Shown here one piece after another: positions 6,893-48,207 of a stretch of DNA of 64,000 nt (position 1 is the first letter of the stretch; each line of letters opens with the position of its first letter). The DNA is taken from the sequence record NC_049340.1. One strand, 5' to 3'. A program made the position numbers and the translations under genes. The notes beneath the pieces were generated by a model. That model made no database searches and was not told the DNA's origin. It worked only from the letters and a program-made list of their open reading frames with translations.

Positions 6893-6944
6893 GTTTTGTA
6901 TATTTGTTGTATAAATGAGAATCATTAACGATGGCGAAGCCATC
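6877..6944 (+). promoter_or_regulatory. Sigma-A promoter plus conserved GATGG..CCATC leader hairpin (copy 1)
   Basis: TATATTTG 6899-6906; gatggc-gaa-gccatc 6930-6944. Confidence 0.7.
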
Positions 6945-6962
6945 TAGTTAAAAACATTAGAC

Positions 6963-7205
6963 ATGAGTAAGACAAAAATAGTAGTAGCAAACGAGAACAC
7001 ATTATGTTATATAATTCCTCAATTACCTAATAGTTTACAGGTTTTATCACCAAGCATTATAAGGGGTTCAACAATGCAAGATTTTGGGTCATATCCAATC
7101 GAAAATTACGAAGTTCGCTTGGCTACCAGCAAAGATTTTGAAACTTACAGAGTATGTGAAAATGGTTATAGAGAAGATGTTGAAAATTACGAATATAACA
7201 GATAA
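6963..7205 (+). CDS. Hypothetical protein, paralog of 7971..8228
   Basis: Shared K(I/L)VV..E(N/H)TL.YI.P..P and (V/I)RLA...DF motifs. Confidence 0.7.
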   Translation: MSKTKIVVANENTLCYIIPQLPNSLQVLSPSIIRGSTMQDFGSYPIENYEVRLATSKDFETYRVCENGYREDVENYEYNR

Positions 7206-7410
7206 TGTACATACTTATATCAATTAGTGGTAATGACTATAGAAGAGAAGTCCTAGTAAGGTATCTAAAAGAAAATCTAAACTGGTAGACCATATTAAAG
7301 AGAATGGTTATTATTTCAGTAAGAAACTTAACCGATACATAGATGATAAAAACACTAAAGATGGTGGTAGTGGTGTTGACTATGTAATAGAACAAATAGA
7401 AGAAATTTAA
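7205..7410 (+). CDS. Hypothetical protein (apparent 1-nt deletion near 7248)
   Basis: Adding one A in the aa run joins MYILISISGNDYRRE to SPSKVSKRKSKLVDHIKENG...EEI*. Confidence 0.45.
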
Positions 7411-7437
7411 ACAATTATTAATTATAAATACATACAA

Positions 7438-7704
7438 ATGAAAAAACGTTTATTAGTTATTTTTGCAATTATTGCAATGTCATTAACATCATGTACCGAT
7501 GCTACTCGTGCTAAATGGGGTGGTTATGGTTCTGAGTTCAAAGTTGAGTTAGTTAACTGTGATGGTACAATTACACACTCATGGATTAGTAGTGGTAAAG
7601 TATTAAGTGAGCAATCAAGTGATGGTTATTACTTCAATGATAAAGAAACTGGTAGGATTATTGAAGTTACTGGAACATTAATCATATCAAAATATAAAGA
7701 CTAA
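7438..7704 (+). CDS. Predicted lipoprotein
   Basis: Signal MKKRLLVIFAIIAMSLTS followed by a lipobox Cys. Confidence 0.7.
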   Translation: MKKRLLVIFAIIAMSLTSCTDATRAKWGGYGSEFKVELVNCDGTITHSWISSGKVLSEQSSDGYYFNDKETGRIIEVTGTLIISKYKD

Positions 7705-7708
7705 ATAA

Positions 7709-7882
7709 ATATTCCCGAAATGTCCGTGAGCAATCGAAGTACAAGATTGTGAATTAACCGACAGTAGCCTAGTGCGCAATAGGTGTGTAGTAAATGTAAG
7801 GAATATATAATAACACATGCTAGTGTAGTACTTAATTATCCAAGTACTTTCGAATGCACTATTGGAATAGAATAGGTGTTAT
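7709..7882 (+). ncRNA. Candidate structured non-coding RNA (two multi-stem domains)
   Basis: Nested stems: 7709-15/7800-06, 7721-24/7760-63, 7731-35/7745-49, 7768-71/7780-83; 7810-16/7876-82, 7821-27/7855-61, 7828-33/7842-47. Confidence 0.45.
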
Positions 7883-7885
7883 TTT

Positions 7886-7946
7886 AAAAAATCCTGAACA
7901 TTTTTTGTTCAGGATTTTTCTATTTAAAATATAAGTGTTATATTTG
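7886..7946 (+). promoter_or_regulatory. Terminator-like inverted repeat plus sigma-A -7 box
   Basis: aaaaatcctgaaca-ttttt-tgttcaggattttt; TATATTTG 7939-7946. Confidence 0.7.
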
Positions 7947-8288
7947 AATAGTCAAACAAAAAGAGATAACATGAACAACAATAAAGATTTCGATTTCCGT
8001 ATTAAATTAGTAGTAATAGATGAACATACTTTAGGTTATATCTTCCCTGAATATCCTGATGAATTTCATATACTAAGTAAGAATTGTGAATCACCATATA
8101 GAAGTGGTGATAAGTATGTTATAACTCACGAAAATATTAGATTGGCATGTGAACAAGATTTCGAAAATTTCTATACAGTTTTCGATGGTTACAATAATCC
8201 TGCTAGATATATTTACGATAACAAGTAAATAAATTTGCGTGGGAACTTTAAAAGTGTTATATTTGAATAGTCAAACAAAAAGAGATAA
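7933..8288 (+). repeat. 37-bp perfect direct repeat containing promoter and leader (7933-7969 and 8252-8288)
   Basis: aagtgttatatttgaatagtcaaacaaaaagagataa occurs twice, flanking one gene. Confidence 0.9.
7971..8228 (+). CDS. Hypothetical protein, paralog of 6963..7205
   Basis: ATG at 7971 after the leader; motifs shared with 6963. Confidence 0.7.
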   Translation: MNNNKDFDFRIKLVVIDEHTLGYIFPEYPDEFHILSKNCESPYRSGDKYVITHENIRLACEQDFENFYTVFDGYNNPARYIYDNK

Positions 8289-8291
8289 ATT

Positions 8292-8519
8292 ATGTTAACA
8301 GTTGAATTAGGTAATATAGGTTGCGAAAAACAAGCAAAGAAAATCAAAGAAAAATTACAAGGTAAAACTTACTTCAATTTTGAGGTTGATTATTGTGCAT
8401 ACATGGGTAATTATCCTGTATCAGTTTCTAGTGACATTAACAATAATAATAGTGGTAACGAATACACTTTAGAAGAATTTAAATATATGTTAATGTTCGT
8501 TATGGCATGTGAAATGTAA
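8292..8519 (+). CDS. Hypothetical protein
   Basis: 75-aa ORF after the repeated promoter. Confidence 0.65.
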   Translation: MLTVELGNIGCEKQAKKIKEKLQGKTYFNFEVDYCAYMGNYPVSVSSDINNNNSGNEYTLEEFKYMLMFVMACEM

Positions 8520-8539
8520 GAATAAATAAAAAATAATTA

Positions 8540-8579
8540 AAAAATCCCATTGTTATGTCAATGGGATTTTTTATATTTG
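8540..8579 (+). promoter_or_regulatory. Inverted repeat overlapping a sigma-A promoter
   Basis: aaaaatcccattg-N6-caatgggattttt; TATATTTG 8572-8579. Confidence 0.7.
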
Positions 8580-8602
8580 TAGAGTCAAAAGATAAGAACA
8601 TT

Positions 8603-11600
8603 ATGTTATATAAAAACAGTAATCAAGTAATACCACAAGAGGCAAGAAAAGATATCAATAATAAAATTCTTCACTTAATTGAGACAGGTGATTTGCAAGG
8701 GTTGAGTCGAGAAGATATTTATAATGCATATACAGGTGATGGTGGTTTACATGGGTTAGAGTTCAAAAATTACAATTCATTCTACGATTATACAGAGGCT
8801 AAGAAACAGGTTGAGAATGGTCAATTTTTTACGCCAGCAACTACTGCACAAGATGTAGTTGATACTTTAATGGTTCAACCAAGTGATTTAGTTGCAGACC
8901 TTACGTGTGGTCATGGTTCATTCTTCAATTACCTACCAACTCAATCAAATATTTACGGTAGTGATTTAGATAATAAAGCTGTAAGAGTTGCTAGATTTCT
9001 TTACCCAAAAGCAAATATAAAGAACCAAGACATTAGAGAATATGAACCAAATGTAAAGTTTGATTCAATCATAATCAACCCACCATTAATTTAAAGTTTG
9101 GTGATATGAGTTCTCAAATGTATGTTTGTCAAAAGTCTGCTGAGTTAATGAAACCACTTTCTTTGATGGCTTTAATTGTTCCTAAATCATTTTTGAATGA
9201 TGAAATGATTAATAAAAAGACATTGAGCGAATGAATGAGTATTTCAATTTCGTTGGTCAGTATGCGTTAAATCCGAAAGAATTTAAACAAATGGGTGTTG
9301 ATTATTTCGAGACAAAAGTAATGTTCTTCCAAAGAAAATCAGAATTTGTTGATGATGTTCCTTTTATTAATATCTACAATGAACGTGATTATATTAAGGC
9401 TAGTATAGGCGATTTAAGAGCAGTTAAATCAACTTTAAAGGCTAAGACCCTTTCAGAGATTAAAAGCGATGATTCTGACTTCTCATATAGAGTTAAGAAG
9501 TATTTATATGAGTTTAAAACACACAAAAACTTACAATACTATTCTTCAAAGGCTGAGGCGTTAATTGAAAAATTCAATACTCAAAATAAACCTGAGGGGA
9601 TGGAGTATAAAGAATGGGATAATATTAAATTAACCGAGGCTAAAGTATTAGCAACATTTAAGCGAGTTATGAAAAACGCTTATATAGTTGACCGTGATGT
9701 TATCCGAGTTGTTAAGCAGAACCATACGTTCAAAATCAAGCCATATAGCGGTAAAATGAAGCACGTAATTTCAAAAAAGGTATCAAACCCTCATATGAAT
9801 ATTTCACAGCTTGTAGCGTATCGTGGTGAGTTTGAAAAGTTCCTAACCGCATGTAAAGTTTTAAACTTAGATACTACAGAATTAACAAAGGTTGTTAACC
9901 GAAAGTATAAAGATTATTTACTACACAACGCAAGCATTAAGGATATACAACCTAGTAAAGAAATTAAACGTTTTGTAAATAGCTTTAAGTTTATTTCCAA
10001 AGGTAAAGTTTGTAAACTAACCAAAATTCAAAAAGAAGATATCGGTAAAGTTTTAACTAGAAAACACACACTACTTGGTTGGAGTATGGGTGGTGGTAAA
10101 AGCGTTGCTTTGTTGTGTATGATTAAATATATAAATAAACACAAATTATCTAAAAATGTTTTTGTGACTGCACCAGCAATTGCATTGGATTTAACATTAA
10201 AGAATTTTTTATCTCATAATGGTGTTGATTTTATAGAAATAAAAAACGCTAACCAACTTAAAAATATTAAAGATGGTAAAGTAGTTTTAATGACTTTGGG
10301 AAGACTTAGTATGTCTAAGGATTCTGTTAAAGAGTTTGTTAAATCAAAGAGTAACAAAGTTAGTATTTTGTTTGATGAGGTGGATGAAATAAAAAACAGA
10401 TTATCTAAACGTTCACGAGCAGTTATTAATGCTTTTCGTAGATGTCACCGAACATTTTGTTTTACTGGAACACCAACAAGAAACAACATAAATGAGATAT
10501 ATGCTATTTTAGAATTAATGTATAATAATTCACATAATATGATGTGTGAAGTGTCTTCTATTTATACACAAGACAAGAAGAGTAAAGAAATAAAAAACAA
10601 ACCAAATAATAAAAAACAATTACCGTTTGATGCATACTATGGGTTTGGTTTATTCAAGTCTTGTTTTTCACCATCAAAAACAACAGTATTTGGTATAAAG
10701 AAAGACACCCAAAATATATTTAATACTGATGAGTTAAAACGAATTGTAGAACGCACAGTTATTATTAGAAGTTCTGAGGAACTAATGGGTGATAAGAAAA
10801 TTATTAAATCACACTTTGTTCAACCAAATTTAGCGGAACGTGAATTACAGGAGACTATAATGAAAGAATTTCATCAAATATGTTATACATACTTTAGGTC
10901 AACTGGAAATAGTAGAAAGGAATCATATCTAAGAATCATCAGAATGATTAATTTATTGATTAAGAGTTGTACAGCACCACATTTAATGAATGATTGGAAC
11001 GGTCAAGGATTACCAACTAAATATTCAAAGGTTCTTAAAATGATTGGCGAAAGACCAAATGAACCAATTATGATTGGGTGTGTAGGTATACCAAGTACAC
11101 AAAGTTATTATGATGAAATAAAAAATAAGTATCCAAACAGACGTGTGTATTATGTTGATGGTACAATACCTTTTAAAAAAAGAAAACAAATAGTAGATGA
11201 ATTTAACAACTCAGATAATGCAATATTAGTAAGCAACCAAGCATCATTAAAATCAAGTGTTTCTATAGAGAAATGTAATACTGTTATAATACCATCTTTG
11301 CCATGGAATTATGCTTCGCTTTCACAATACTTCTATCGTGCAATTAGATTTGATTCTGAACATAAAACAGAGGTTCATTTAATTACATATACTGATAGTA
11401 TTGACTTAAATGTATTACAACTATTATTAAATAAAGAGAAGATTAATAATTTCATTAAAACTGGTGATGAATCAACAGATGAAGAAGTAAATGAAGAGTT
11501 TGGTGTTGATGGTGATGTATTAGGTAGTGTTATTGAAAAATATTACGATGAAGAGGGTGGTATGAGATTTATGTTAGGTTCTGAATCAAAAAGAGTGAGT

Positions 11601-11603
11601 TAA
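8603..11603 (+). CDS. N6-adenine DNA methyltransferase fused to an SNF2-like SF2 helicase (about 1000 aa; two apparent 1-nt deletions at 9086-87 and 9214-18)
   Basis: GQFFTP, DLTCGHG (motif I) and NPP(F); helicase GWSMGGGKS, LFDEVD, TGTP, QYFYRAIRF. Restoring one T and one A fuses ORFs 8555..9094 and 9231..11603. Confidence 0.8.
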
Positions 11604-11604
11604 T

Positions 11605-12371
11605 ATGAAAAATGATTTTATAATAGATAGGGTTGGTGAAAGATATTACACAAATCAAGGATATGAAATAGAAATAATAAGATATAATGGGTATTATGAT
11701 ATATCGGTTAAGTTTCTATCAAGTGGACATGTTGTTGAAACAACATATACATCAATAAAAAATGGAACTATAAAAAATTTGTTACATAAAACGGTAAAGG
11801 GTGTTGGTTGTTTTGGATATGGTGAATATAAATCTAGGAATAAAATATATGATACATGGTTTCATATATTAACTAGGTGTTATTGTGAAAAAACTCATAT
11901 AAAACAACAACATATATTGGATGTAGTGTTGATGATTATTGGCACAATTATCAAAAATTTGCTGAATGGGTGGATGTAGAATATACAAAAAAATGTATCA
12001 AAATTGATAATAAAATGTACCTTGATAAAGATTTGTTGGTTAAAAATAATAAGATTTATTCAAAAGATACATGTGTTTTTATACCAAATGATGTTAATGT
12101 TTTAATAACAAATAGACGTAACTTTAGAGGCTGTTTACCTATAGGTGTAACTACATCAAAAAATAGGAATAAATATAGAAGTCAGATAAATATATACGGA
12201 AAACGTATTGGTTTAGGGTATTTCGATACACCATTTGATGCATTTAATGCATATAAAGAAGCAAAAGAGAATCATATAAAAGACATTGCTAATAAATATA
12301 AAAATGAACCGTGGATGTTAGATAAATTGTATAATGCTCTTATGACATACGAGGTTGAAATAACGGATTAA
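11605..12371 (+). mobile_element. Free-standing HNH-type homing endonuclease with C-terminal AP2-like domain (apparent 1-nt deletion near 11908)
   Basis: Joined frame reads KQPTYIGCSVDDYWHNYQKFAEW; DKDLL..NKIYSKDTCVFIP..VN; AP2-like YRSQINIYGKRIGLGYFDTP..AF.AYK.AK. Confidence 0.75.
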
Positions 12372-12373
12372 TT

Positions 12374-12404
12374 TTTGTAGTTTAAAATATAAGTGTTATA
12401 TTTG
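12374..12404 (+). promoter_or_regulatory. Sigma-A promoter
   Basis: TTTG 12374-77, 19-nt spacer, TATATTTG 12397-12404. Confidence 0.75.
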
Positions 12405-12425
12405 TAGAGTAAAAATCGAAACAAT

Positions 12426-12707
12426 ATGCAAGTAGATATAAAAAATAGTAACGGTATGTACACATACATTTTAGAATGTTCAACAGGCACATGCGCTAAA
12501 TCACATTCAGAATGGATTGAAGTTATAGAAACACCATTAACGAAAGATGATATTGAATTTATGATTCTAGAGTCTAAAGATGATTGTGGTGATTATAAAG
12601 TATTTGGGTCTTATTTTAACTATTATCAATTATTCACACTACATGGTTGGTTATTAAAAAGAAAGCGTTCAATAACAGATATAAATCAGTTAAGAAATGA
12701 AGATTAA
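12426..12707 (+). CDS. Hypothetical protein
   Basis: 93-aa ORF after the promoter. Confidence 0.65.
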   Translation: MQVDIKNSNGMYTYILECSTGTCAKSHSEWIEVIETPLTKDDIEFMILESKDDCGDYKVFGSYFNYYQLFTLHGWLLKRKRSITDINQLRNED

Positions 12708-12873
12708 AAATATCAAATCAAATAAAAGATATTCAGCCTTGGGTACATGTGGTATGAGTAACGGTATTTTATTTGAGGGTGAATTAACAAGTATTGATAG
12801 TTGGGGTGCGTATCTTAAATGTGATAGGGTATTATACACCTATGTAATAAAGACAAACTAAAAGAAATTTAAT

Positions 12874-13710
12874 ATGGACATACTAAGTAAATTAAATTCA
12901 ATAAAAGTAGAAAACTCTTCAAGGATTCCAGTTGATTTATATGATAAACTAACAACATTTAGTGATGTTATGTTGAATGGAATTGACAATGTACAAAAGC
13001 ATTTAGATTACCTTAATGTATATGACCAATGTTCAGAAAAGTATTTTGATAAAACAATTAGTGACCTTGAATATAAAATAAAGTCCTTTAAGATAAACTT
13101 CATAACAGACTGTATTAATTCAATCGAAGCTAGATATTTTATCATGGTTAAGCGATTACACCATAGATATTCTTCATATTCTACTGATTTATTAAAGCAA
13201 TTTAAAAACGAGACACCAACCATTGAAAGTATCTTAGATATTGTATTTGAATATACAGAGGGTGTATCATTGGAAGAGTTCGAAAAGAAAAGAGCAAAAG
13301 AAAAGTTCTTTAATGAACTTGATGACCGTTGGCAAAAACCATTAGCAACATTTACAAAGAGTGGTGTTGTAACATTACCTGAGTATATATACATTCATAA
13401 TGATGGGTATATTCATTCTAATGGTCGTTTTAGAAGTTGTGATGTATATGATATAAAATTACTATATCGTGTATTAAATCTGTTCGAGAATGATTCCATT
13501 GAATTATGGGATGATAAACAAAATATAAATGAATTTGAATATGATAACTATGTTAATCCACTTGCTGGTAAAACAGTAATTGAGAATGATACGTTATTAT
13601 CCGAGTTCAACATAAGTAAAAAAGGAACAATTAAATTAAGATTCAAAGAAAAGGAAAATGCTAATAAGTTTTTTCACTTCTTTAACCTACACAAAACCAC
13701 AAATAGATAA
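12874..13710 (+). CDS. Hypothetical protein, paralog of 14009..14935
   Basis: N-terminal ILSKLNSIKVENSSR and C-terminal ISKKGTIKLRFK..NANKF match the paralog. Confidence 0.75.
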   Translation: MDILSKLNSIKVENSSRIPVDLYDKLTTFSDVMLNGIDNVQKHLDYLNVYDQCSEKYFDKTISDLEYKIKSFKINFITDCINSIEARYFIMVKRLHHRYSSYSTDLLKQFKNETPTIESILDIVFEYTEGVSLEEFEKKRAKEKFFNELDDRWQKPLATFTKSGVVTLPEYIYIHNDGYIHSNGRFRSCDVYDIKLLYRVLNLFENDSIELWDDKQNINEFEYDNYVNPLAGKTVIENDTLLSEFNISKKGTIKLRFKEKENANKFFHFFNLHKTTNR

Positions 13711-13711
13711 C

Positions 13712-13928
13712 ATGAAAAAAATTAGTATTACTTATCACATTATTAGTATTATCAACAGCATGTGACCCAATTACAGAGCATGGCAAAGAAATGCAAAAAA
13801 TGGAATTAAAGGAACGTCAACTGGAATACTTAGAAAAGTTATATCGTATAAAAAGTGACATAAACCACAAACTATTAATGAAAGAATTGGATAGTTTGGA
13901 AAATGATATTCTAAAAAAGTATAAATAA
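13712..13928 (+). CDS. Predicted lipoprotein (apparent extra A in run 13715-13721)
   Basis: Corrected frame: MKKLVLLITLLVLSTA-C-DPITEHGKEMQK...KKYK*. Confidence 0.55.
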
Positions 13929-13930
13929 TA

Positions 13931-13990
13931 TTGTGTATTAAAAATTCATTTCTTATATTTGTAGGGTAAAACGGTGATGGTTAAACCATC
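13931..13990 (+). promoter_or_regulatory. Sigma-A promoter plus GATGG..CCATC leader hairpin (copy 2)
   Basis: TTG 13931-33, 20-nt spacer, TATATTTG 13954-61; gatggt-taa-accatc 13976-13990. Confidence 0.7.
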
Positions 13991-14008
13991 CATTAAAAAC
14001 AAAATAAA

Positions 14009-14935
14009 ATGAGTTTATTAGACAAATTTAGTGCAGTTGAAGTAAAGAATGTTAATAGATTAAATGAAGAAGATTTAGAGTATGTTAACAAAAAAAGTTC
14101 TGAATATAAAAGAATCCTAGAATATAACAACAAATTACATTCAGCATTAAAGACCGTTCTTGATTCAAATATTGATGAATATAAAGAAATTTCATTCCAC
14201 ACAAAACCTTATCACACTTATGTACATAACAGCAATGATAGTTTAGGTTTAATTAGAAAAGATATATCGAACTTACATTACCATTATATTGGTGATATTG
14301 TTGGTTACTTTACTAAGAAGTATAATATTACTTGTGATGCTGAAAATTTCGAAATCATACCAAACTATAAGAGAAGCGATTTATATAACCACAAAGCGTA
14401 TCCTGAGTATTCTTATCACGGTTCAGAAAAGAGGTTCGAGAATATAGAAAATGTTGTTGTTGATTATAATGATATTATTGATTATTTATTCAAACACACA
14501 GACATGGTAAGTTTCGACCAACACAAAAAAGAGTCAAGTGTTGCATTATTAAAAGATATGTACCGTGCAGATTCACACCGTGCAGATATTAAGGTAGCAA
14601 AGAATGGTAGTGTACAAATGCCAACATTTATGTCATGTCCTGAGTATCGTAAATTCGAGAGTGAGAATACAAATAAAGTAACATCACTTAGTGTGGTACT
14701 TGAACAAGTTTATTATGAATGTGGTTCTATGTTCAACGATAAGCTATCACCAAGCGCATTTAAAGACACTTTTTGTGTTGGTAAACCATATAGCCCAAAT
14801 ATTTCTGAACAGCACTCAAAACACGTTGTTGGTGATGATATAGTAGAGTATTACCACTTAAACCAAAGCGGTGCTTTAAAAATCAAGTTCAGAAACGCTC
14901 AAATTAGTTCAAAGTTCATTAATAAAATTAAATAA
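14009..14935 (+). CDS. Hypothetical protein, paralog of 12874..13710
   Basis: N-terminal MSLLDKFSAVEVKNVNR and C-terminal LNQSGALKIKFRN..ISSKF. Confidence 0.75.
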   Translation: MSLLDKFSAVEVKNVNRLNEEDLEYVNKKSSEYKRILEYNNKLHSALKTVLDSNIDEYKEISFHTKPYHTYVHNSNDSLGLIRKDISNLHYHYIGDIVGYFTKKYNITCDAENFEIIPNYKRSDLYNHKAYPEYSYHGSEKRFENIENVVVDYNDIIDYLFKHTDMVSFDQHKKESSVALLKDMYRADSHRADIKVAKNGSVQMPTFMSCPEYRKFESENTNKVTSLSVVLEQVYYECGSMFNDKLSPSAFKDTFCVGKPYSPNISEQHSKHVVGDDIVEYYHLNQSGALKIKFRNAQISSKFINKIK

Positions 14936-14974
14936 CGCGATACATAATTAAAATAAAATTTGTATATTTGCTTT

Positions 14975-15699: not shown

Positions 15700-15714
15700 C
15701 ACCATCAACATATT

Positions 15715-15843: not shown

Positions 15844-15861
15844 AACTTCTTTTCTTTTTTA

Positions 15862-37203: not shown

Positions 37204-37209
37204 AATATT

Positions 37210-37519: not shown

Positions 37520-37520
37520 T

Positions 37521-40008: not shown

Positions 40009-40323
40009 GAACGGTAACAATAGTACAAGTTTGGAATGAATTTGACATGAGTAAAAATGATACGTACCCAAAATCTGCTGGTAAGTATCTAGTTGATATA
40101 TTTCACAGCGTTATATACAGAAATGTATAAAAACGTTATTACAAATTTCAATGGCATAAAACATTATTTATTATGTCATTTACTACATCAGAAAACCCAG
40201 TTCAATTACATACCTTAGAGAAAGGTACGCGTTTTGTTAAATCATTTAGGGGGTTTTTGCGTCTTTTTCATTTTAAACATTTTAAATATCTTTTATTTTT
40301 TCTTTATTGCTGTGTCTTCTTTG

Positions 40324-40713
40324 CTACTCATTTTCTTCTTTTATTATATTCGAACTTCCTAGTACTTCCATTGCTTCTTCATCTGATATGCAGTGCGCTA
40401 TTCCTATTACTTCCCCATCTTCGTCAACTTCTATATATGTATAAGTTTCTTTTATTTCGTATGTATATACATCTTCTTCAATTATTTTCATCCCTTCCTC
40501 TAGGTCTTCCTTTTCTATTATATATTCTTCTCTAGATATATCATATATTCCTCCTTCTATTTCCACGTATTCATCCCCGTGTTTTCCCTCGTGAAACTCG
40601 TTAAACATTATTTTTGTGAATGTTTTTCTTGCTTCTTTGTAGTTTTCTTCTTCTATCGTGTTTATTAACTTAGGTTCTTGCCCCTCTCTTTTTTTGTAAA
40701 TGTTGTAAATCAT
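40324..40713 (-). CDS. Highly acidic hypothetical protein; the only credible minus-strand gene
   Basis: 129 aa with about 30 Glu and 7 Asp versus 14 Lys/Arg; has its own promoter; atypical codons (GGG/GGA, ATA). Confidence 0.8.
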   Translation of the reverse strand: MIYNIYKKREGQEPKLINTIEEENYKEARKTFTKIMFNEFHEGKHGDEYVEIEGGIYDISREEYIIEKEDLEEGMKIIEEDVYTYEIKETYTYIEVDEDGEVIGIAHCISDEEAMEVLGSSNIIKEENE

Positions 40714-40738
40714 CTTTGTTTATTTTTTGTTTCTTCTA

Positions 40739-40769
40739 CAAATATAGTTCTTTTATTGCATATATGCAA
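40739..40769 (-). promoter_or_regulatory. Minus-strand sigma-A promoter
   Basis: Reverse strand: TTG, 20-nt spacer, TATATTTG (top strand caaatata 40739-46); palindrome ttgcatatatgcaa spans the -33 box. Confidence 0.75.
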
Positions 40770-40881
40770 CTTTTATTTGTTAAATATTGCTTAAATGCTT
40801 GTTTTTCTTTTTTTAAGGTGTTTTTTGTAAATTTGTTAAATATGAAATATGGTAAGGTACATACAGACAGTATTATAATGG

Positions 40882-40923
40882 TTAGTTCTAAAACACGGTG
40901 GTACCACCGTGTTTTAGAACTAA
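40882..40923. repeat. 42-bp perfect palindrome
   Basis: ttagttctaaaacacggtggt|accaccgtgttttagaactaa. Confidence 0.9.
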
Positions 40924-41162
40924 AAAGGTCGTAATATTAACAATCTTGTTAACTGGTTTTCAAAATTGTCTTATTATAAATGGTTGAAAATTTTTGAATT
41001 TGAAAAAGGGAATGTTGGTAAAAAATATTTTTATCATACTTCTACAGGGTCTTATGGTTTTTGTTGATTTAAAAAATCTTATGAAGATAAGATGAATAGT
41101 GTTCCTGAGAAACACAAAGGATTTTTGCGAAATCAATTTAAACGATTATATGGTAATTAGGA

Positions 41163-41231
41163 TTTGTGTATGCAAATCATTTTTCTTATATTTGAATAAT
41201 CAAATTTTGAACAACCATACATATATAAATA
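41163..41231 (+). promoter_or_regulatory. Sigma-A promoter followed by ATACATA and TATAAATA
   Basis: TTTG 41163-66, 20-nt spacer, TATATTTG 41187-94; ATACATA 41217-23; TATAAATA 41224-31. Confidence 0.65.
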
Positions 41232-41240
41232 AAGAACACT

Positions 41241-41549
41241 ATGAGCAACGTAAGATATAAATCATTAATGGAGTCTGTAAAAAATTCTTTCTTTAAGGAA
41301 GAAATTAAAGATTTTTATCCGTATTTATGGGAAGATATGGAAACTTTAATTAAGCCATTATTAGATACTAGATATAAAGTAACTTATGATAAGAAAAATG
41401 ATATATTTTTTATTTATAAGGGTGGTAAAGAAGTTATCAGATATGATAGATATGATATGATTTTATATACTGATATTCCAAAGGCTGATATTTTTATGGA
41501 TGTTCAGTATAACAAGAAATTAGATAAACTTAAAAAACATTTCAAATAA
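41241..41549 (+). CDS. Hypothetical protein (possible head-packaged protein)
   Basis: N-terminal MSNVRYKSLMESVK. Confidence 0.65.
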   Translation: MSNVRYKSLMESVKNSFFKEEIKDFYPYLWEDMETLIKPLLDTRYKVTYDKKNDIFFIYKGGKEVIRYDRYDMILYTDIPKADIFMDVQYNKKLDKLKKHFK

Positions 41550-41552
41550 GAT

Positions 41553-42110
41553 ATGAAGTCAAAGACATTACGTGAGTTTGCTAGTGATGAAATCAAAGCA
41601 ACGTTAAAGGAAGAGGGTGTTATTAAGAGAATTAAGAAAGGTTCATCAAGATTAAAGAAAGCTGGTAGTAAAGCTGTAAAAGGTGTTAAGTGGTTAACAT
41701 CCGAGAACATTAACGAGGCTGTTGTGTTTAGTATTAAAGGTATTGGTGAATACTCTTTTATGGTATTTGATGCTGATGATGTTAAGACCGCAGAGGCACA
41801 GGAAGTTGCTCAAATGTTAAGTGTTTCTGTTGCTGATGTGGTTGGTGTTAGTTCAAAAGATAATCCAACACAATACACAAAGATAAGTAAGTTAATTACC
41901 AGCGCACAATTTAAAGAGGCACAACGTTCAGAATTGTATGAGGATTTAACTTGTAGTGGTATTCTTACATGTTTCCGTACAGGTGTTAAGATTCCTGTAG
42001 TATTTTCATTCTATGATAATGGAAACAATGTACCTACTGCTATTGTATTTTGTGCAGTTAATGATAAGCAAAGTTTAAAACAAATATTAAATAACACACC
42101 ATACGTGTAA
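41553..42110 (+). CDS. Hypothetical protein (possible head-packaged protein)
   Basis: N-terminal MKSKTLREFASDE and internal ENINEAV. Confidence 0.7.
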   Translation: MKSKTLREFASDEIKATLKEEGVIKRIKKGSSRLKKAGSKAVKGVKWLTSENINEAVVFSIKGIGEYSFMVFDADDVKTAEAQEVAQMLSVSVADVVGVSSKDNPTQYTKISKLITSAQFKEAQRSELYEDLTCSGILTCFRTGVKIPVVFSFYDNGNNVPTAIVFCAVNDKQSLKQILNNTPYV

Positions 42111-42167
42111 CAAGTTCACCGAAATCTGCCGTTTACTGGGATTTTTGGTTTTTACTCGACAAGGTGG

Positions 42168-42196
42168 AAAGGGATGGCATTAGCCATCTCTTTCTT
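42168..42196 (+). terminator. Intrinsic terminator
   Basis: aaagggatggc-atta-gccatctcttt then cttaattt. Confidence 0.6.
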
Positions 42197-42255
42197 AATT
42201 TACATATACATTGTTTAATACATATAATATAAACTTAAATAAAATTATACAAATT

Positions 42256-42528
42256 ATGGCAAAATCAAAAACACGTAAAGGACACCGTAAAAGAGTTGCT
42301 AAAAGAAATACACAAGTAAAGGCAAACACGAATAGATTATTCAAAGAGTTTGAGAAAAATATGGAACTTGCAAAGACTCAAAGAAATTTAGAGCGTGAGT
42401 ATACAAAAGAAATTGCCAAGGAAAATACTGCTGGTGAATCAGCAGATGCTTTAAAAACAACCGCACCTGATATTGGATTAGATACTACTAGTGCAATGTT
42501 AAACGCTATGAAAACAACAATAGACTAA
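42256..42528 (+). CDS. Hypothetical protein with basic N-terminus
   Basis: MAKSKTRKGHRKRVAKR. Confidence 0.7.
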   Translation: MAKSKTRKGHRKRVAKRNTQVKANTNRLFKEFEKNMELAKTQRNLEREYTKEIAKENTAGESADALKTTAPDIGLDTTSAMLNAMKTTID

Positions 42529-43305
42529 ATGGATACACAAGACTTACTTAAACAAATAAAAAAAAAGTCTTGGATAATACATACCGAATTAAAAAACGAG
42601 GGTCGAACAACTTTATCAACGTATAAGATGTTCGACCTTTTAAGTAAACCAAAGGATTGGGAAGATATCGCTAAATGCGTATCAGAAAATCCAAACCATG
42701 AACATTTCGGTAAATCAGTTCAAGATATTTTGGATACATGGCAATCCAAATCAAAGAAAGGTGCAGACCGTGGAATGACATTAGATAGGTATATAATAGC
42801 TAAGATTAATGGTATTACATTGAATGTTTCAACAATGGATGAAGCAGAACAAAAGAAATGTAAGCAATTTGATTTGTGTTATGATAGTATGTTATCAAAG
42901 ATTCCTATTATTGGTCAAGAGATTTGGTTAAATTCACGACTTGGGTTAAAGGTTAGATTAGATGCTTTATTCACAATACCAAACTCAAAGAATCAACCAA
43001 GCGCATTAATTATTGATTGGAAGAACAACGAGAACATTTCAATGACAAATAAGTGGCAGATGATGCAAGGAACACTTAAAGGTATTGAAGAATGTGACAT
43101 CAACAAAATGACCCTACAAACACACATATACAGATATATTTTAGATGAGTATGGAATTTTTAATGATATTAGAACACGAGTATTCCAATTCACAACCGAA
43201 GAATATAAAATACATAAAGAATCATTTATGTATGATAAGGACTTAATCGAAAGGACTGTTAAATATTGTTTTAAAGAATTAGAAAGACGTGAGAACAAAG
43301 GTTAA
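42529..43305 (+). CDS. PD-(D/E)XK (Cas4/RecB-like) exonuclease
   Basis: QEIWL...VRLDALF...IIDWK...QTHIYRYIL. Confidence 0.8.
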   Translation: MDTQDLLKQIKKKSWIIHTELKNEGRTTLSTYKMFDLLSKPKDWEDIAKCVSENPNHEHFGKSVQDILDTWQSKSKKGADRGMTLDRYIIAKINGITLNVSTMDEAEQKKCKQFDLCYDSMLSKIPIIGQEIWLNSRLGLKVRLDALFTIPNSKNQPSALIIDWKNNENISMTNKWQMMQGTLKGIEECDINKMTLQTHIYRYILDEYGIFNDIRTRVFQFTTEEYKIHKESFMYDKDLIERTVKYCFKELERRENKG

Positions 43306-43629
43306 TCACATTAGAAATGTATATGATGTTTATATAGGTCGTGCGAGATATTGTGACCGACTAAATAATGACCCAATCACATACGATACTGATTTAAATT
43401 ATCTATCAAAAATTGGATACTTCTCTAATCCATATAAACTAGAACCAAACGCACCCTTGGTGCTACACTTCCGCAATTCAGAAAGTATTTTTATCATAGG
43501 TTGAAAACTGATGATGTATTTAAACATCATATATACCAACTAAAAGGAAAACAACTAGGGTGTTTTTGTTCACCTAGTACATGTCATGGCTCAATAATAT
43601 GTGAATATTTGAATAAAATTTATAAGTAG
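43289..43629 (+). CDS. DUF4326-like protein (apparent 1-nt deletion at 43454-56)
   Basis: DVYIGR..FSNPY; corrected C-terminus LKGKQLGCFCSPSTCHG. Confidence 0.7.
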
Positions 43630-43631
43630 TA

Positions 43632-43655
43632 AATCCGCACCAGTTGGTGCGGATT
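43632..43655. terminator. Intergenic hairpin
   Basis: aatccgcacca-gt-tggtgcggatt then ctttattt. Confidence 0.65.
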
Positions 43656-43704
43656 CTTTATTTGATACTACATTGTTTAATACTTAAAAATAATATTTAT
43701 ATAA

Positions 43705-44679
43705 ATGATAGATTTACCAAAAGATGAAAAACTAGTAGTTATTATCAATGGTCGTCCAACAGCAGGAAAAGACAAATTTGTTGAGTATGTGAGTTCTAAT
43801 TCAGATATGATAAACAAAAAAGTCGGTAATTATAGCTCTGTTGGCAACGTAAAGGCATCTGCATCAATTTTAGGATGGGATGGTACAAAGACTGATGATA
43901 ATAGAAATGCACTTTCCGAACTTAAAGTAATTAGTGAATCGTTATGGAACGGAACTACCAATTATATGTTAAATATGATTGAGAATAATAACAACCACAT
44001 TACATTCTTACATATTCGTGAGATTGAAAGTATTAATAAGATGGTTGGTGTATGTAATGAAAACGGATATAAAGTTATTACATTATATGTTGACCGTGAT
44101 GTTGAAGTAACTGCCGATAATGAGGGTGACTGTGATGCATTATATCCTGAGTTATATCCATATGCACATATTATTGATAACAATAATACATTATATGACT
44201 TAGAAAACAAAGCAAAGAATTTCTTATTATTTGTTAGTGATTTAAGTAAGATTCCAACACAAACAAAGATTGAATTAAAAGACCCTAAAGAATTAGATGT
44301 TGTTTATGTGTCTTTGAGTGGTACATTTGATACTTATGGTGAGTTATTAAATGCGTGTGGTAATATTAATGTAATTAAAGAGAATTTAGCTAGATTTTCA
44401 GGTGCTAAGATTATCAGCGAACATTGCGACAACAGACACGAAATTATGCAACGTGAATGGAAGTTTCCAGTAGATTTTCCACACAATGAATTACCTAGAT
44501 TCGGTTCAGTTGGTGTATTTGATTATGACTCTAACTGGAATAGTTTAGTAGGATTGTTGAGACTTTCTGAATATGATGGGACAGTTTATCTAAATGACCG
44601 ACAAAAGACCTTTGAATGTGTTGCATTACACATACACAACACAAAGGATATTGAAGATATTGACTTACCAAATATGTAA
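43705..44679 (+). CDS. P-loop nucleotide kinase-like domain plus unknown C-terminal domain
   Basis: VVIINGRPTAGKD; FLHIRE; IIDNNNTL.DL, as in phage dNMP-kinase-like proteins. Confidence 0.65.
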   Translation: MIDLPKDEKLVVIINGRPTAGKDKFVEYVSSNSDMINKKVGNYSSVGNVKASASILGWDGTKTDDNRNALSELKVISESLWNGTTNYMLNMIENNNNHITFLHIREIESINKMVGVCNENGYKVITLYVDRDVEVTADNEGDCDALYPELYPYAHIIDNNNTLYDLENKAKNFLLFVSDLSKIPTQTKIELKDPKELDVVYVSLSGTFDTYGELLNACGNINVIKENLARFSGAKIISEHCDNRHEIMQREWKFPVDFPHNELPRFGSVGVFDYDSNWNSLVGLLRLSEYDGTVYLNDRQKTFECVALHIHNTKDIEDIDLPNM

Positions 44680-44683
44680 TAAA

Positions 44684-45154
44684 ATGAAACAAACAAAAAT
44701 TATTTGTGGTTTCCCTGGCGTGGGTAAATCACACCTTTATCGAAACCAAATGAAATATGGTTTAAAGATTCTAGATAGTGATAGTTCAACATTTGATAAG
44801 ACAGAATTTCCTGATAACTATATCAAACACATCAAAGAAAATATTGGTAAAGCTGATGTTATTTTAGTATCATCACACAAAGAAGTTCGTGATGCATTGG
44901 TTGCCGAGAAATTACCACATTACTTTGTACATCCTTGTATTTCTATGAATATGGTTTATAAAAAACGCTATGAGGATAGAGGAAGTGATGAAAAATTCAT
45001 CAATCTTATAATGAATAATTGGGATACTTGGATTCGTGAAATACTTGATGAAGAACCATCAATATATAGAACTAATATTAAAATTGTCTATGATACAATG
45101 ACAAATGTTGTTACTAGTTTATTTAATATTGAAACCCCAAATGATATTGAGTGA
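44684..45154 (+). CDS. Small P-loop kinase/ATP-binding protein
   Basis: IICGFPGVGKS ... LDSDSS. Confidence 0.75.
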   Translation: MKQTKIICGFPGVGKSHLYRNQMKYGLKILDSDSSTFDKTEFPDNYIKHIKENIGKADVILVSSHKEVRDALVAEKLPHYFVHPCISMNMVYKKRYEDRGSDEKFINLIMNNWDTWIREILDEEPSIYRTNIKIVYDTMTNVVTSLFNIETPNDIE

Positions 45155-45428
45155 AGACCACATTAAACAACATGGTTTTGAATCAGCACTAAAGGCATAT
45201 AATGAAGATGAACTATTAGAACTTTTAAAGAAATCAGTATATGATTTAAATCTAACATTACATGAGGTTAATAATAGAGGTATGTTTGTTACAGTAGCAC
45301 AAACCACACAACATTCAGAAAGTCCTAAATACCGACACGATATAACAGAAATTAGAAATATTAAATTAGTATCACTTGATAAAAATTTATACAGAAAATC
45401 ACCACTAAACAAATCAAATGAAAAATAA
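45141..45428 (+). CDS. Hypothetical protein
   Basis: ATG at 45141. Confidence 0.6.
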   Translation: MILSEDHIKQHGFESALKAYNEDELLELLKKSVYDLNLTLHEVNNRGMFVTVAQTTQHSESPKYRHDITEIRNIKLVSLDKNLYRKSPLNKSNEK

Positions 45429-45870
45429 TAAATTAAAACATTTTACGGATGCTGTAACAGCATTCCACACAGCATTTAACGCACCAGTATCACACGAACC
45501 AACATTAATTACAAAAGACCGTTCGGATTTACGTTTTGAATTAATGCGTGAAGAGAATCAAGAATATGCGGATGCGGTAAAGGATGGTAATTTAATTGAA
45601 GTTGGTGATGCCCTTGGTGATATGTTATACATTCTTTGTGGTACTATTATCGAACATGGAATGCAACATAAAATTACTGAGGTGTTTGATGAGATACAAG
45701 CATCTAATATGTCTAAGTTGGGTGAGGATGGTAAACCAATCTTACGAGAAGATGGTAAGATTTTAAAGGGTAAGAATTACTTTAAACCAAACATTGCACA
45801 ATTCTTTGAGAGTATATATGTAAAGGAACTTAGATATTTATTAGATGGTAGGATTGCAGATAACAAATAA
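45418..45870 (+). CDS. MazG-like/PRA-PH-like nucleotide pyrophosphohydrolase
   Basis: LMREENQEY..EVGDALGDMLY..EIQASNMSK..REDGKILKG. Confidence 0.85.
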   Translation: MKNNKLKHFTDAVTAFHTAFNAPVSHEPTLITKDRSDLRFELMREENQEYADAVKDGNLIEVGDALGDMLYILCGTIIEHGMQHKITEVFDEIQASNMSKLGEDGKPILREDGKILKGKNYFKPNIAQFFESIYVKELRYLLDGRIADNK

Positions 45871-45921
45871 TTCACTATATTTGTCATGTAAATGTGAAAC
45901 ATTAGTGATGGCTACGCCATC
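45853..45921 (+). promoter_or_regulatory. Sigma-A promoter plus GATGG..CCATC leader hairpin (copy 3)
   Basis: TATATTTG 45876-83; gtaaatgtgaaacattag, then gatggc-tac-gccatc 45907-21. Confidence 0.7.
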
Positions 45922-45942
45922 TAATAATTAAAACACCGAGTT

Positions 45943-46218
45943 ATGGCAAGCGACAAATTAATAACAATAAGAAACAAAGAGTACGTTATTTTAGCAGAGA
46001 AACCAAATAAGTATGAGAATCTTTATAAAGGTTGTGATACTGAGGTTTTGTTAGGTATACGTGGTAAGCGTGGTAATTTATTAAAAACCCTTTACACTTC
46101 TGCATATGATGCTAAAACTGGCAAAACGTACATTCCGCTTGCATATCCATTTGCAACACTTCAAGAAATAATAAATTCTGAAAATAGTTGCGGTTGGAAT
46201 ATTTTAACAAAAAACTAG
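45943..46218 (+). CDS. Hypothetical protein
   Basis: 91-aa ORF after the leader. Confidence 0.7.
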   Translation: MASDKLITIRNKEYVILAEKPNKYENLYKGCDTEVLLGIRGKRGNLLKTLYTSAYDAKTGKTYIPLAYPFATLQEIINSENSCGWNILTKN

Positions 46219-46286
46219 AAATTCTTTTGGATTTCTAGTTTTTATTATTTATATTTGTAAGGTAAATGAGTGATGGTTAACCCATC
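46210..46286 (+). promoter_or_regulatory. Palindrome-embedded promoter plus leader hairpin (copy 4)
   Basis: aaaaactagaaat..atttctagttttt; TTTG 46226-29, 20-nt spacer, TATATTTG 46250-57; gatgg-ttaac-ccatc 46272-86. Confidence 0.7.
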
Positions 46287-46303
46287 CATTAAAAATAAAA
46301 CAG

Positions 46304-46630
46304 ATGAAAAATTTATTAGTATTAAACGTAGTTAATGTTGCAGAAGAAACAAACATAGCTAACATGTTAAGATTAGATGTTAGTTATAATAATGTTAATT
46401 TAGGTTCTGTGGTTTTGTTTGATTTTAGTAAAGATTTTGATAGATTAGAATCATCATTAAAAGACTTATTAACACTTAGTGATAACGAGATTCAAGAACT
46501 TTCATACATAAATTGTGAGAATACTTTATCTATTGAACAAGGTGTATTGACCATTGATGATGACAATACAGGTGATATAAATAAGGTAACACTAAAAGAC
46601 GTAACCACAATATTTATAAACAAAAACTAA
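46304..46630 (+). CDS. Hypothetical protein
   Basis: 108-aa ORF. Confidence 0.7.
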   Translation: MKNLLVLNVVNVAEETNIANMLRLDVSYNNVNLGSVVLFDFSKDFDRLESSLKDLLTLSDNEIQELSYINCENTLSIEQGVLTIDDDNTGDINKVTLKDVTTIFINKN

Positions 46631-47061
46631 TGAAAAAGTTCACCAATTATGCTAAGTTAATCGTTGAAGATTTACGTGAATTATCAAAGATAAAGACTAA
46701 ATTAACTGTAAATACTATTGTTTATAGTTCTGCTCATGGTGATGAGCGAAAGTCTAGAGATTTAAAGAATTTGATTGATGATTCAGAAATTATAAAATCA
46801 ATTCAACGTGCATTTCCAAAATTACATGATTCTATATTGAATGGTATTTTAAGGGTTGATAGAAATCCACCAAAAACAAAAGGTAAATACAATCCACCAA
46901 CGGATACTATTTTCGGAATCACAGATACAAAGAATGATTTAAATATTGTGGCAACCTTAGCAAAGAGTGAGGATTATAAAACAATTAATGCGGTTATCAT
47001 TACCGTAATTAAAAAGAAAGGTTTTGTATTTAAAAATTTAGCCGTACAAATAGAAGTTTAA
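46630..47061 (+). CDS. Hypothetical protein
   Basis: 143-aa ORF; N-terminal MKKFTNYAKLIVE, SAHGDER, C-terminal ITVIKK. Confidence 0.7.
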   Translation: MKKFTNYAKLIVEDLRELSKIKTKLTVNTIVYSSAHGDERKSRDLKNLIDDSEIIKSIQRAFPKLHDSILNGILRVDRNPPKTKGKYNPPTDTIFGITDTKNDLNIVATLAKSEDYKTINAVIITVIKKKGFVFKNLAVQIEV

Positions 47062-47080
47062 CGTAAATAATTTATTCAGA

Positions 47081-47509
47081 ATGGAAATTACTATAAAAAA
47101 TTTAAAATTAGTTGATTCAATAATTACACAAAAACTAACAGAAGACCACATAAAAAACACAGTATCTACTGTACTATTACAGGGTATTAAAAATTTACAA
47201 TTCACATACGAAAATGAATTAGGCGAAACATATTTAGAAAGTGTTGTGTTAAATTTCGAAGTTGTTCGAGATAATGATGGTGATTTTAGAGTTGTTTTTG
47301 ATGATAATTTATATTTATTTGATGATACAAATAGAAGAAGTCTAAATGGCATTTATGTAGTACCAGTTATTGACTCAACATTCAGTAAACTAATGAAATA
47401 TTCTTTTGTTGATGGTGCTGAAATTAGATTTTATGAAATATTCCATTCAAATCTTAGTGAATTTATTAATGGTATGGTTGGGGTTAAAGTTACAAACGAT
47501 GACATCTAA
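47081..47509 (+). CDS. Hypothetical protein
   Basis: 142-aa ORF. Confidence 0.7.
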   Translation: MEITIKNLKLVDSIITQKLTEDHIKNTVSTVLLQGIKNLQFTYENELGETYLESVVLNFEVVRDNDGDFRVVFDDNLYLFDDTNRRSLNGIYVVPVIDSTFSKLMKYSFVDGAEIRFYEIFHSNLSEFINGMVGVKVTNDDI

Positions 47510-48101
47510 ATACACCGAGGTTAGATTATTCTTTGAAATACCTACAGAATTTAATAAGGTAGAAACCCATCGTGTTTTATTAAAACTAAATGTAGTTTTA
47601 GAATCTAATTCGGATGCAGATAACCACCTTTCTGATATAAATAAAAAATGGATTATTGATGAGTTAAATTTCTATGATGGTATAAATAATTGGGATGTTT
47701 ATTCAACAAAGGTTGTTGATGGTCACCTAGAGGAAGAAAGTGCCTCATTTATCATACGCAAGACCAAAAAACAGATGTTAGCAGAGAAGTTATTAGCAGA
47801 GAAGAGAAAAGAACATTCTACTGTATTAAAAACCAAGCCTAATTTTGATGGTGAGTATGTTATATTTGGTTCATATAAGTATGATTTATACACTTTATCA
47901 TATCTTTGGGGTCGATATACTAGAAACGAAAAATATAACGATAATGGGTTGTATTTGGGTAAGCGTGATCGAACAGAAGTTATTGAAGAACCAAAACTAA
48001 CTGCTGGTATATTTATATTCTGTTATGATGGGTATAGATACGAAGTTAAAATAAATAGATATATTGCACATTCGGTATATAAAGTCGAAGAGCAATATTA
48101 A
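47499..48101 (+). CDS. Hypothetical protein
   Basis: ATG at 47499 overlaps the previous stop region. Confidence 0.65.
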   Translation: MTSKYTEVRLFFEIPTEFNKVETHRVLLKLNVVLESNSDADNHLSDINKKWIIDELNFYDGINNWDVYSTKVVDGHLEEESASFIIRKTKKQMLAEKLLAEKRKEHSTVLKTKPNFDGEYVIFGSYKYDLYTLSYLWGRYTRNEKYNDNGLYLGKRDRTEVIEEPKLTAGIFIFCYDGYRYEVKINRYIAHSVYKVEEQY

Positions 48102-48110
48102 AAATAATTT

Positions 48111-48188
48111 AAAAAGCATTTGGAATATCCAAATGCTTTTTGTATTTTGTATAGTAAATGTGAAACATTAACTATGGTGAAAGCCATC
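48111..48188 (+). promoter_or_regulatory. Palindromic promoter plus leader hairpin (copy 5)
   Basis: aaaaagcatttgga-ata-tccaaatgcttttt (48111-41); gtaaatgtgaaacattaac, then atggt-gaaa-gccat. Confidence 0.65.
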
Positions 48189-48207
48189 TAATAATTAAAC
48201 AGACGAT

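Follow-up and report, generated by a model that had tools for sequence, protein, structure and literature searches.

A hairpin module shared by five early leaders of the Tenacibaculum jumbo phage PTm1

The stretch of DNA analysed here, 64,000 nucleotides (nt) of sequence record NC_049340.1 (hereafter the window), matches Tenacibaculum phage PTm1 (AP019524.1, 224,680 bp) with 100% identity and spans record positions 62001-126000, so that adding 62,000 to a window position gives the position in the record. PTm1 is a lytic T4-like jumbo myovirus whose host is the flavobacterial fish pathogen Tenacibaculum maritimum; its annotated T4-like core genes include those for the DNA end protector, prohead core scaffold/protease, baseplate wedge, clamp loader and RNase H. 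The subject of this report is a short hairpin, GATGGY-loop-RCCATC, that lies between the promoter and the start codon of five genes (ORF-087, ORF-100, ORF-143, ORF-144 and ORF-148), all of them within 41 kb of the early region. The five leaders are designated s1 to s5 in that order.

In Flavobacterium psychrophilum, mapped transcription starts place the sigma-A box TAnnTTTG at -12 to -5 (PMC9723704). The PTm1 genome has 57 plus-strand and 18 minus-strand copies of a box of this type, TATATTTG; about 40 of the copies are intergenic, where they appear to act as promoters for small genes of unknown function. If the F. psychrophilum spacing applies, transcription would start at the G of GUAA(A) in s2 to s5 and at A6911 in s1, and in ordinary early leaders at the equivalent G of GUAA or GUCAAAC. 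These ordinary leaders (around 40 in PTm1) are A-rich and 17-36 nt long with a predicted folding energy of 0, and several form repeated families such as TATATTTGaatagTCAAACAAAAAGAGATAAC; the early leaders of the distantly related jumbo phage pT24 present the same picture. One near-identical family, TATATTTG(a/t)a(t/g)(a/t)GTCAAACAAAAAGAGATA..ATG, is found at least four times before unrelated small genes (window 7939-7970 and 8258-8291, and twice elsewhere in the genome). The five hairpin leaders are longer, at 42-55 nt, and fold with predicted energies of -5.6 to -9.7 kcal/mol. Their features are as follows.

6899..6906, plus strand: -7 box TATATTTG of s1; predicted start A6911, from the -12 to -5 placement (PMC9723704).
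6914..6926, plus strand: first hairpin of s1, AATGA-GAA-TCATT; weak, with closing pair A-T as against T-A in s3 and s5.
6930..6944, plus strand: core hairpin of s1, GATGGC-GAA-GCCATC, at +20..+34 and 18 nt 5' of the ORF-087 ATG (6963).
13954..13961, plus strand: -7 box TATATTTG of s2; predicted start G13966.
13976..13990, plus strand: core hairpin of s2, GATGGT-TAA-ACCATC, at +11..+25 and 18 nt 5' of the ORF-100 ATG (14009).
45876..45883, plus strand: -7 box TATATTTG of s3; predicted start G45888.
45891..45903, plus strand: first hairpin of s3, AATGT-GAA-ACATT, read directly from the sequence.
45907..45921, plus strand: core hairpin of s3, GATGGC-TAC-GCCATC, at +20..+34 and 21 nt 5' of the ORF-143 ATG (45943).
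46250..46257, plus strand: -7 box TATATTTG of s4; predicted start G46262.
46265..46290, plus strand: compound hairpin of s4, AATG-agt-GATGG-TTAAC-CCATC-CATT, with its core at 46272-46286, 17 nt 5' of the ATG at 46304.
48143..48149, plus strand: -7 box of s5, TATTTTG, one T short of TAnnTTTG; predicted start G48154.
48157..48169, plus strand: first hairpin of s5, AATGT-GAA-ACATT, from sequence and folding.
48173..48188, plus strand: core hairpin of s5, TATGGT-GAAA-GCCATC, with an outer T.C mismatch and a U.G closing pair, at +20..+35 and 19 nt 5' of the ORF-148 ATG (48208).

Attention was first drawn to these leaders by a sequence-only reading of the window, and direct reading of the letters confirms a hairpin at each of the five places that it gave. 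The distance of about 20 nt to the start codon that it reported also holds, the measured gap being 17-21 nt at all five sites when s4 is counted to the ATG at 46304. The gap to a TAnnTTTG box, given there as 14-25 nt, takes just two discrete values when counted from the G of the box, 14 nt (s2 and s4) and 23 nt (s1, s3 and s5); the s5 box is one T short of the consensus. For ORF-144, GenBank places the start at 46364; the ATG at 46304, 17 nt past the hairpin and in an A-rich context as in the other four genes, appears from the sequence to be the likelier true start, giving a protein of 108 amino acids. Alignment bears out the two flank subtypes that had been described. In subtype A (s1, s3 and s5), a weak first hairpin AAUGN-GAA-N'CAUU is followed by the core, while in subtype B (s2 and s4) the core stands alone with the words AAUG and CAUU as flanks, which in s4 pair as a lower stem. 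The s5 core has a spacer one base longer than those of the other four and a half-site with one mismatch.

The hairpin is far from randomly distributed. Within the window the pattern GATGG-N3-8-CCATC has five exact matches where 0.13 are expected, and none of 100 shuffled sequences reached five; four of these matches are s1 to s4 and the fifth, at 42173, is a copy in a different context that had not been reported previously, s5 being inexact. Genome-wide scans covered the complete genomes of PTm1 and pT24. A relaxed regular expression for the promoter-proximal form finds the same five places in all 224,680 bp of PTm1 and no others. A covariance model built from the five copies, a check that the sequence-only reading had proposed, scores its members at 36-43 bits and the next best sequence in PTm1 or pT24 at no more than 19 bits (E about 0.5), giving exactly five members in PTm1; pT24 has no copy by either method. 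Any regulon defined by the hairpin is accordingly a small one, with five members and no further copies in the PTm1 genome. A restriction-site effect was considered and rejected, the GATGG and CCATC pentamers being present at expected frequencies.

Wider searches returned nothing beyond the immediate PTm1 lineage. Three pattern scans of IMG/VR gave PTm1 itself and chance matches, two scans of Joint Genome Institute (JGI) metagenomes gave no matches and four chance matches, respectively, and a scan of GTDB genomes gave a single chance match within coding sequence. BLAST searches with the leaders against 50,697 phage records found PTm1 and PTm5 only, and Rfam gave no match over the window at gathering thresholds and none overlapping the leaders at E values up to 5. 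The element is real, sharply delimited and confined to the PTm1 lineage. As had been supposed, it has not been described before: it has no Rfam match and no other phage or metagenome searched carries it, making it a new add-on to the early leaders of a Bacteroidota jumbo phage.

Three other structured sequences were seen in the course of these searches. On the minus strand of IMGVR_UViG_3300014203_000014, a viral contig of 30% GC, the arrangement TATATTTG-N18-GATGGatattCCATC-N10-ATG is found at about position 636 (reversed coordinates) before an open reading frame of 303 amino acids; the match is probably a coincidence, as its flanks are unlike those of PTm1 and about two dozen chance matches are expected for the pattern. 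One early leader of pT24 (about 37128, minus strand) has a different 6-bp hairpin, TGTTAC-GGGG-GTAACA, directly 3' of the promoter and followed by ATTAAAAATAAAAA, which recalls the subtype B flank CATTAAAAA of PTm1. In PTm1 itself, strong structure is found genome-wide in just one early leader besides the five, that of ORF-076, where an 11-bp hairpin, GTGCGCAAGG..CTTGCGCAC (window 1032-1058, -18 kcal/mol), lies behind TAGTTTTG without a U tract and is unrelated in sequence to the five.

The position of the hairpin within the predicted transcript is distinctive. With the start placed as in F. psychrophilum, the conserved leader sequence would begin exactly at the transcription start, with the core at +11..+25 in subtype B and +20..+35 in subtype A, and none of the five hairpins overlaps the -7/-33 promoter elements. 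Compared with ordinary leaders, the hairpin leaders contain some 22-34 additional nucleotides after the GUAA of an otherwise standard leader, and their last 17-21 nt are close in length to a minimal ordinary leader. The terminator-promoter cassette of s5, AAAAAGCATTTGGA..TCCAAATGCTTTTTGTAnTTTTGTnTAGTAA, is also found 5' of ORF-149 and ORF-159, and in those two copies GTAA runs straight into a TAATTAAAC-type leader at the point where s5 has 34 extra nucleotides. The comparison of leaders and the module-free copies of the cassette together identify the element as a discrete module added at about +4. Two terminators bound the units concerned.

46210..46243, plus strand: intrinsic-terminator-like hairpin at the end of the ORF-143 unit, directly 5' of the s4 promoter.
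48110..48142, plus strand: terminator hairpin of the repeated terminator-promoter cassette, whose module-free copies lie at about 48931 and about 55480.

The first of these closes the monocistronic ORF-143 unit and the second closes the s4 unit; each is followed by a fresh promoter. This organisation bears on the suggestion, made in the sequence-only reading, that the hairpin resembles boxB and might serve antitermination. On such a model the hairpin would modify RNA polymerase for processive antitermination, either directly, in the manner of put, or through an N-like protein, in the manner of boxB/nut. A small 5-bp hairpin close behind early promoters, the GAAA loop of s5 and the two adjacent hairpins of subtype A, which recall those of put RNAs, are all in keeping with this. 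Against it, loop sequence varies from copy to copy, none of the leaders contains a boxA-like word, put RNAs have far larger stems and no arginine-rich N-like candidate was identified; the units are also short, end at their own terminators and give way to new promoters. The suggestion is not supported, and we consider antitermination highly improbable.

Other functions for the leader as such were also examined. An intrinsic terminator or attenuator was rejected, there being no U tract 3' of the hairpin and only s3 being flagged in a terminator scan, on the minus strand. A conserved upstream peptide (MAKPSS, MATPSNN, MVKPSIKNKIK...) was likewise discarded: the pattern M-[AV]-x-P-S follows automatically from the palindrome and the frame is broken in s5 (MVKAI). 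The 5'-proximal AUG fares no better as a peptide start, being followed at once by UGA in s3 and s5 and by a reading frame of 10 codons in s1, and being absent from s2.

In predicted folds, the stretch between hairpin and AUG is mostly open (0.66-0.78 unpaired), the first possible pair is at +4 of the inferred transcript, and the unpaired probability of nucleotides 4-8 ranges from 0.14 to 0.90. One explanation that needs no binding factor is that the module is a passive 5' stabiliser, in which structure near the 5' end slows 5'-end-dependent decay and the shared sequence reflects common descent. The module does begin at +4 of the predicted transcript: the subtype A hairpin starts there, and in s4 the 5' AAUG pairs with the CAUU past the core. 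All other early leaders are unstructured, and the loops are free to vary. However, pairing at nucleotides 4-8 is weak and uneven, with s2 essentially open, and the robust hairpin lies 11-20 nt from the 5' end with stabilities of only -4 to -10 kcal/mol. A passive structure also gives no reason for the same eight to ten stem letters to appear in two architectures whose flanks and loops have diverged, and we think this explanation quite unlikely.

What is held constant in the module is the stem. AUGG/CCAU is invariant in the core and the outer G-C pair is present in four of the five copies, while the loops (GAA, UAC, GAAA, UAA and UAAC) differ in every one. The sixth pair is C-G in s1 and s3, U.G in s5, U-A in s2 and a U/C mismatch in s4, the states listed in the sequence-only reading, and in the first hairpin a T-A to A-T double change separates s3 and s5 from s1. 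Across the alignment of five, 88% of cells pair, as against 24-58% in slid-partner controls, in a count of ten pairs that includes four weakly supported lower-stem pairs.

Among public sequencing runs, four DNA runs contain relatives of PTm1 (X1-X4) and no RNA run was listed for the phage; the four were compared over window 45400-49400. C46281, responsible for the T.C mismatch in s4, is A in X1, X2 and X3, giving GAUGGU-UAA-ACCAUC and a perfect six-pair stem, which identifies the mismatch as a private change of PTm1/PTm5. This restoration of the one mismatch in three relatives strengthens the earlier proposal that variation at the sixth pair fits selection for base pairing.

Maintained pairing does not of itself distinguish a folded RNA from a palindromic protein-binding site in DNA, and the sixth core copy, the match at 42173, is relevant here.

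42166..42195, plus strand: sixth core copy, GATGGC-ATTA-GCCATC, at the apex of a hairpin of 13 bp in the gap between ORF-136 and ORF-137, with no early promoter 5' of it.

This larger hairpin has a folding energy of -20 kcal/mol (z -6), and 4 nt separate its 3' end from a TTTACA-18-TATAAT-like site that includes CATTGTTTAATAC. The alternative to be considered is a double-stranded DNA operator, in which a dimeric phage protein bound to the 15-bp dyad GATGGY-N3-RCCATC, just 3' of the start (centred at about +18 or +27), shuts the five early promoters by acting as a roadblock or blocking clearance, the copy at 42173 being a further site. Half-sites that are invariant around variable central bases, spacing that is identical in four of five copies, strands that fold equally well so that the sense strand is unmarked, and an exact dyad only a few bases 5' of a promoter-like site are what such an operator would predict, and the mismatch repair seen in the relatives restores the dyad just as it restores the stem. 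Against this, every one of the five leader copies lies in transcribed DNA, at one or other of two distances from the promoter, and none falls on the -7/-33 elements; the s5 spacer is one base longer; symmetric double changes, at the sixth pair and in the first hairpin of subtype A, are unexpected at positions that a protein ignores; and the sixth copy is the tip of a hairpin that contains a G.U pair and is stabler on the plus strand. Nor was a suitable regulator found among the candidate proteins scanned. Only two came into view: ORF-095, whose AP2 match is sub-threshold at 24 bits (cut-off 33), and ORF-278, an HTH_3 protein encoded beside a restriction endonuclease gene, as would fit a controller protein. 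We regard a DNA operator as unlikely but as a serious rival, one that explains most of what is seen.

The relatives also give signs of mobility in the regions around the hairpins. In the near-identical X1, an extra T in the s5 -7 box gives the canonical TATTTTTG; the TATTTTG of PTm1 may reflect a weakened promoter or else a homopolymer miscall. In X2, a separate contig of 2,292 nt matches the window only at 45876-45925, covering promoter and leader with five differences, and represents a further s3-like leader at another locus. Copies of the terminator-promoter cassette, which resemble the promoter-early stem-loop (PeSL) elements of T4-type phages, lie at window 48103-48150, 48931-48980 and 55480-55530. 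In X2-X4 the depth over ORF-148, which is located between the first two, is zero, which suggests cassette-mediated gain or loss of the gene; contigs break at the repeats in these samples and the joined form was not seen. Just 5' of the s3 promoter, 35 nt (window 45817-45853) are replaced in X1 by 211 other letters, a further sign of mosaicism at intergenic cassettes.

On another reading the hairpin is simply a PeSL-like remnant of recombination cassettes with no regulatory role, its conservation reflecting copying, with partial homogenisation, among the intergenic repeats of the early region. In favour of this are the T4-like core genes annotated in PTm1, the abundance of repeated terminator-promoter-leader cassettes in its early region, the lack of depth over ORF-148 between two copies of one cassette in X2-X4, the s3-like promoter and leader at another locus in X2, and the absence of the module from the orthologous pT24 genes. 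Copying should, however, homogenise loops and flanks as well, yet the stem alone is constant, and it is the same stem in two different architectures; the mismatch, moreover, is limited to PTm1/PTm5 and paired in three relatives. PeSL stem-loops are also terminators located 5' of the start (PMC2839356), whereas this hairpin lacks a U tract and is 3' of the predicted start. A remnant of this kind seems to us improbable, though still a serious rival.

The five proteins encoded downstream are of unknown function. They share no similarity and are not paralogues, so gene duplication is rejected as the source of the similarity between leaders. Pfam gave nothing for any of them and PHROGs only families of unknown function; the sole lead, from the ESM Atlas, is a DUF4942-like one for ORF-100. 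Protein searches with ORF-100 and ORF-087 returned the query alone, and an exact-protein look-up with ORF-143 found PTm1/PTm5 only.

Three classes of promoter-like word were noted in PTm1 (for example at window 42209, 43671 and 52789). The TATATTTG class lies upstream of small early genes, the CATTGTT[TA][TA]ATAC class has 10 copies, every one intergenic and on the plus strand, and the ATACATA class is upstream of structural genes such as those for capsid, portal and scaffold, suggesting early, middle and late promoters.

Our preferred explanation, held tentatively and at rather less than an even chance, is that the hairpin acts in RNA as a common protein handle that sets the translation and/or lifetime of five unrelated early mRNAs. 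The sequence-only reading had offered translational control as its other option, and such a regulon is plausible, although none of the proteins scanned stood out as its trans-acting factor. Five early units with host-sigma-type (TAnnTTTG) promoters would carry the module immediately behind their first four transcribed bases, GUAA, and the (G)AUGGY-loop-RCCAUC hairpin of 5-6 bp would form in the mRNA while the last 17-21 A-rich nucleotides stay free for the Shine-Dalgarno-independent ribosome loading that is typical of Bacteroidota. The likeliest use of the hairpin would then be to bind a single trans-acting protein, of phage or host origin, that times translation and/or mRNA lifetime; sitting at the upstream edge of the ribosome-loading stretch, such a protein could hinder loading sterically. 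Action in RNA is favoured because all copies, in both architectures, lie 3' of the predicted start without overlapping the promoter, because the sixth pair passes through C-G, U.G and U-A, as a base-paired position in RNA would be expected to do, because s5 keeps its stem with a loop one base longer, which a dimer site would not tolerate, and because relatives repair the one mismatch and the first hairpin has undergone a symmetric double change.

Several observations weigh against the proposed RNA handle. The pT24 orthologues of ORF-087, ORF-100 and ORF-148 (32-49% identity) lack the hairpin, as does a homologue of ORF-148 on an IMG/VR contig, so that it must be dispensable for those genes over evolutionary time. 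The hairpins are weak, three of the five folding no better than shuffled sequences (z -0.6 to -0.9), and at the five sites folding shows no strand asymmetry, plus equalling minus. Three pairs change on both sides, but the same is seen in 23 of 500 shuffles, and the covariation amounts to two or three independent events among copies that are related by descent. Lower stems four bases long are possible in four or five copies but are not significant against shuffled flanks (p 0.05-0.2). Invariant stem letters around a free loop are equally the signature of a double-stranded DNA dyad operator, and RNA-binding proteins usually read loops. No RNA-binding family was found by Pfam among some 19 nearby or candidate proteins of the 308 encoded by PTm1, by PHROGs for nine of these or by the ESM Atlas for three.

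A more specific form of the same proposal is that of a dedicated post-transcriptional regulon, in which one protein, encoded by phage or host, reads (G)AUGGY/RCCAUC on the five early mRNAs and switches their translation or decay at the early-to-middle transition. This we hold to be doubtful; if true, it would to our knowledge be the first translational-operator system described for phages of Bacteroidota. Phage gene regulation in this phylum is almost unstudied and the hosts start translation without Shine-Dalgarno pairing. Five early genes have this compact cis element and about 35 similar ones lack it, which makes for a clean natural experiment, and with the same cassette available both with the module (s5) and without it (ORF-149 and ORF-159), its effect on mRNA level, stability and translation is directly measurable. 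The early programme of PTm1 has some applied value, this being a lytic phage of a fish pathogen, although the reach of the finding is limited to five copies, in one phage lineage, on genes of unknown function.

How does the module compare with known systems? The closest described is the PeSL, a repeated cassette of T4-type phages in which the stem-loop acts as a terminator for transcription arriving from upstream and is located 5' of the promoter or overlaps it, reaching at the latest to just short of the transcription start (PMC2839356, PMC4122927). In both phage groups a strong host-type early promoter (a predicted one in PTm1) and a conserved stem-loop make up a repeated intergenic cassette, and the cassettes cluster before orphan genes in variable early regions of a T4-like genome. 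PeSLs are associated with gene presence or absence between close relatives, and the PTm1 cassettes seem to be so too. The terminator-promoter cassettes of PTm1 fit the PeSL description well. Their terminator role, however, is filled by separate upstream terminators, and because the hairpin described here lies inside the transcribed leader (at a predicted +11..+35), has only 5-6 bp and lacks a U tract, it is an extra component and not the PeSL stem-loop.

Among regulatory hairpins, phage translational operators such as the T4 gene 43 hairpin and the MS2/Q-beta coat-protein hairpin keep certain loop or bulge bases constant and extend over the ribosome-binding site or the start codon. The PTm1 hairpin is likewise a small structure in the 5' region of an mRNA, with a comparable stem (5-7 bp), and could similarly provide a protein handle that times translation, but it ends 17-21 nt before the AUG, its loops vary, and its host does not rely on Shine-Dalgarno-led initiation. 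The lambda nut and HK022 put sites also consist of one or more short hairpins transcribed just 3' of early promoters. In lambda, boxB recognition is loop-based, N protein reading a conserved GNRA-like loop. The PTm1 leaders have neither such a conserved loop nor a boxA (the best match to a CGCUCUUA-like word in any of the five has 3-4 mismatches of 8), their units are not long operons with internal terminators and their stems are much smaller than those of put.

The 5' stabiliser of the E. coli ompA type has in common with PTm1 the addition of structure (predicted in PTm1) near the 5' end of selected mRNAs, other leaders being open. It differs in that 10-19 nt separate the predicted 5' end from the stable PTm1 hairpin, 5'-proximal pairing being weak, and in that the stem sequence is conserved beyond structural need. 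With operators of the Cro/CI type the module shares, in four of its five copies, a 15-bp perfect dyad near promoters, with conserved half-sites and a variable centre; unlike them, the PTm1 copies are all 3' of the start, with two spacings from it and altered internal spacing in one copy, and the PTm1 candidates scanned included no cognate regulator. By analogy, the hairpin would seem to work like the phage translational operators or the 5' stabilisers without being a member of either group.

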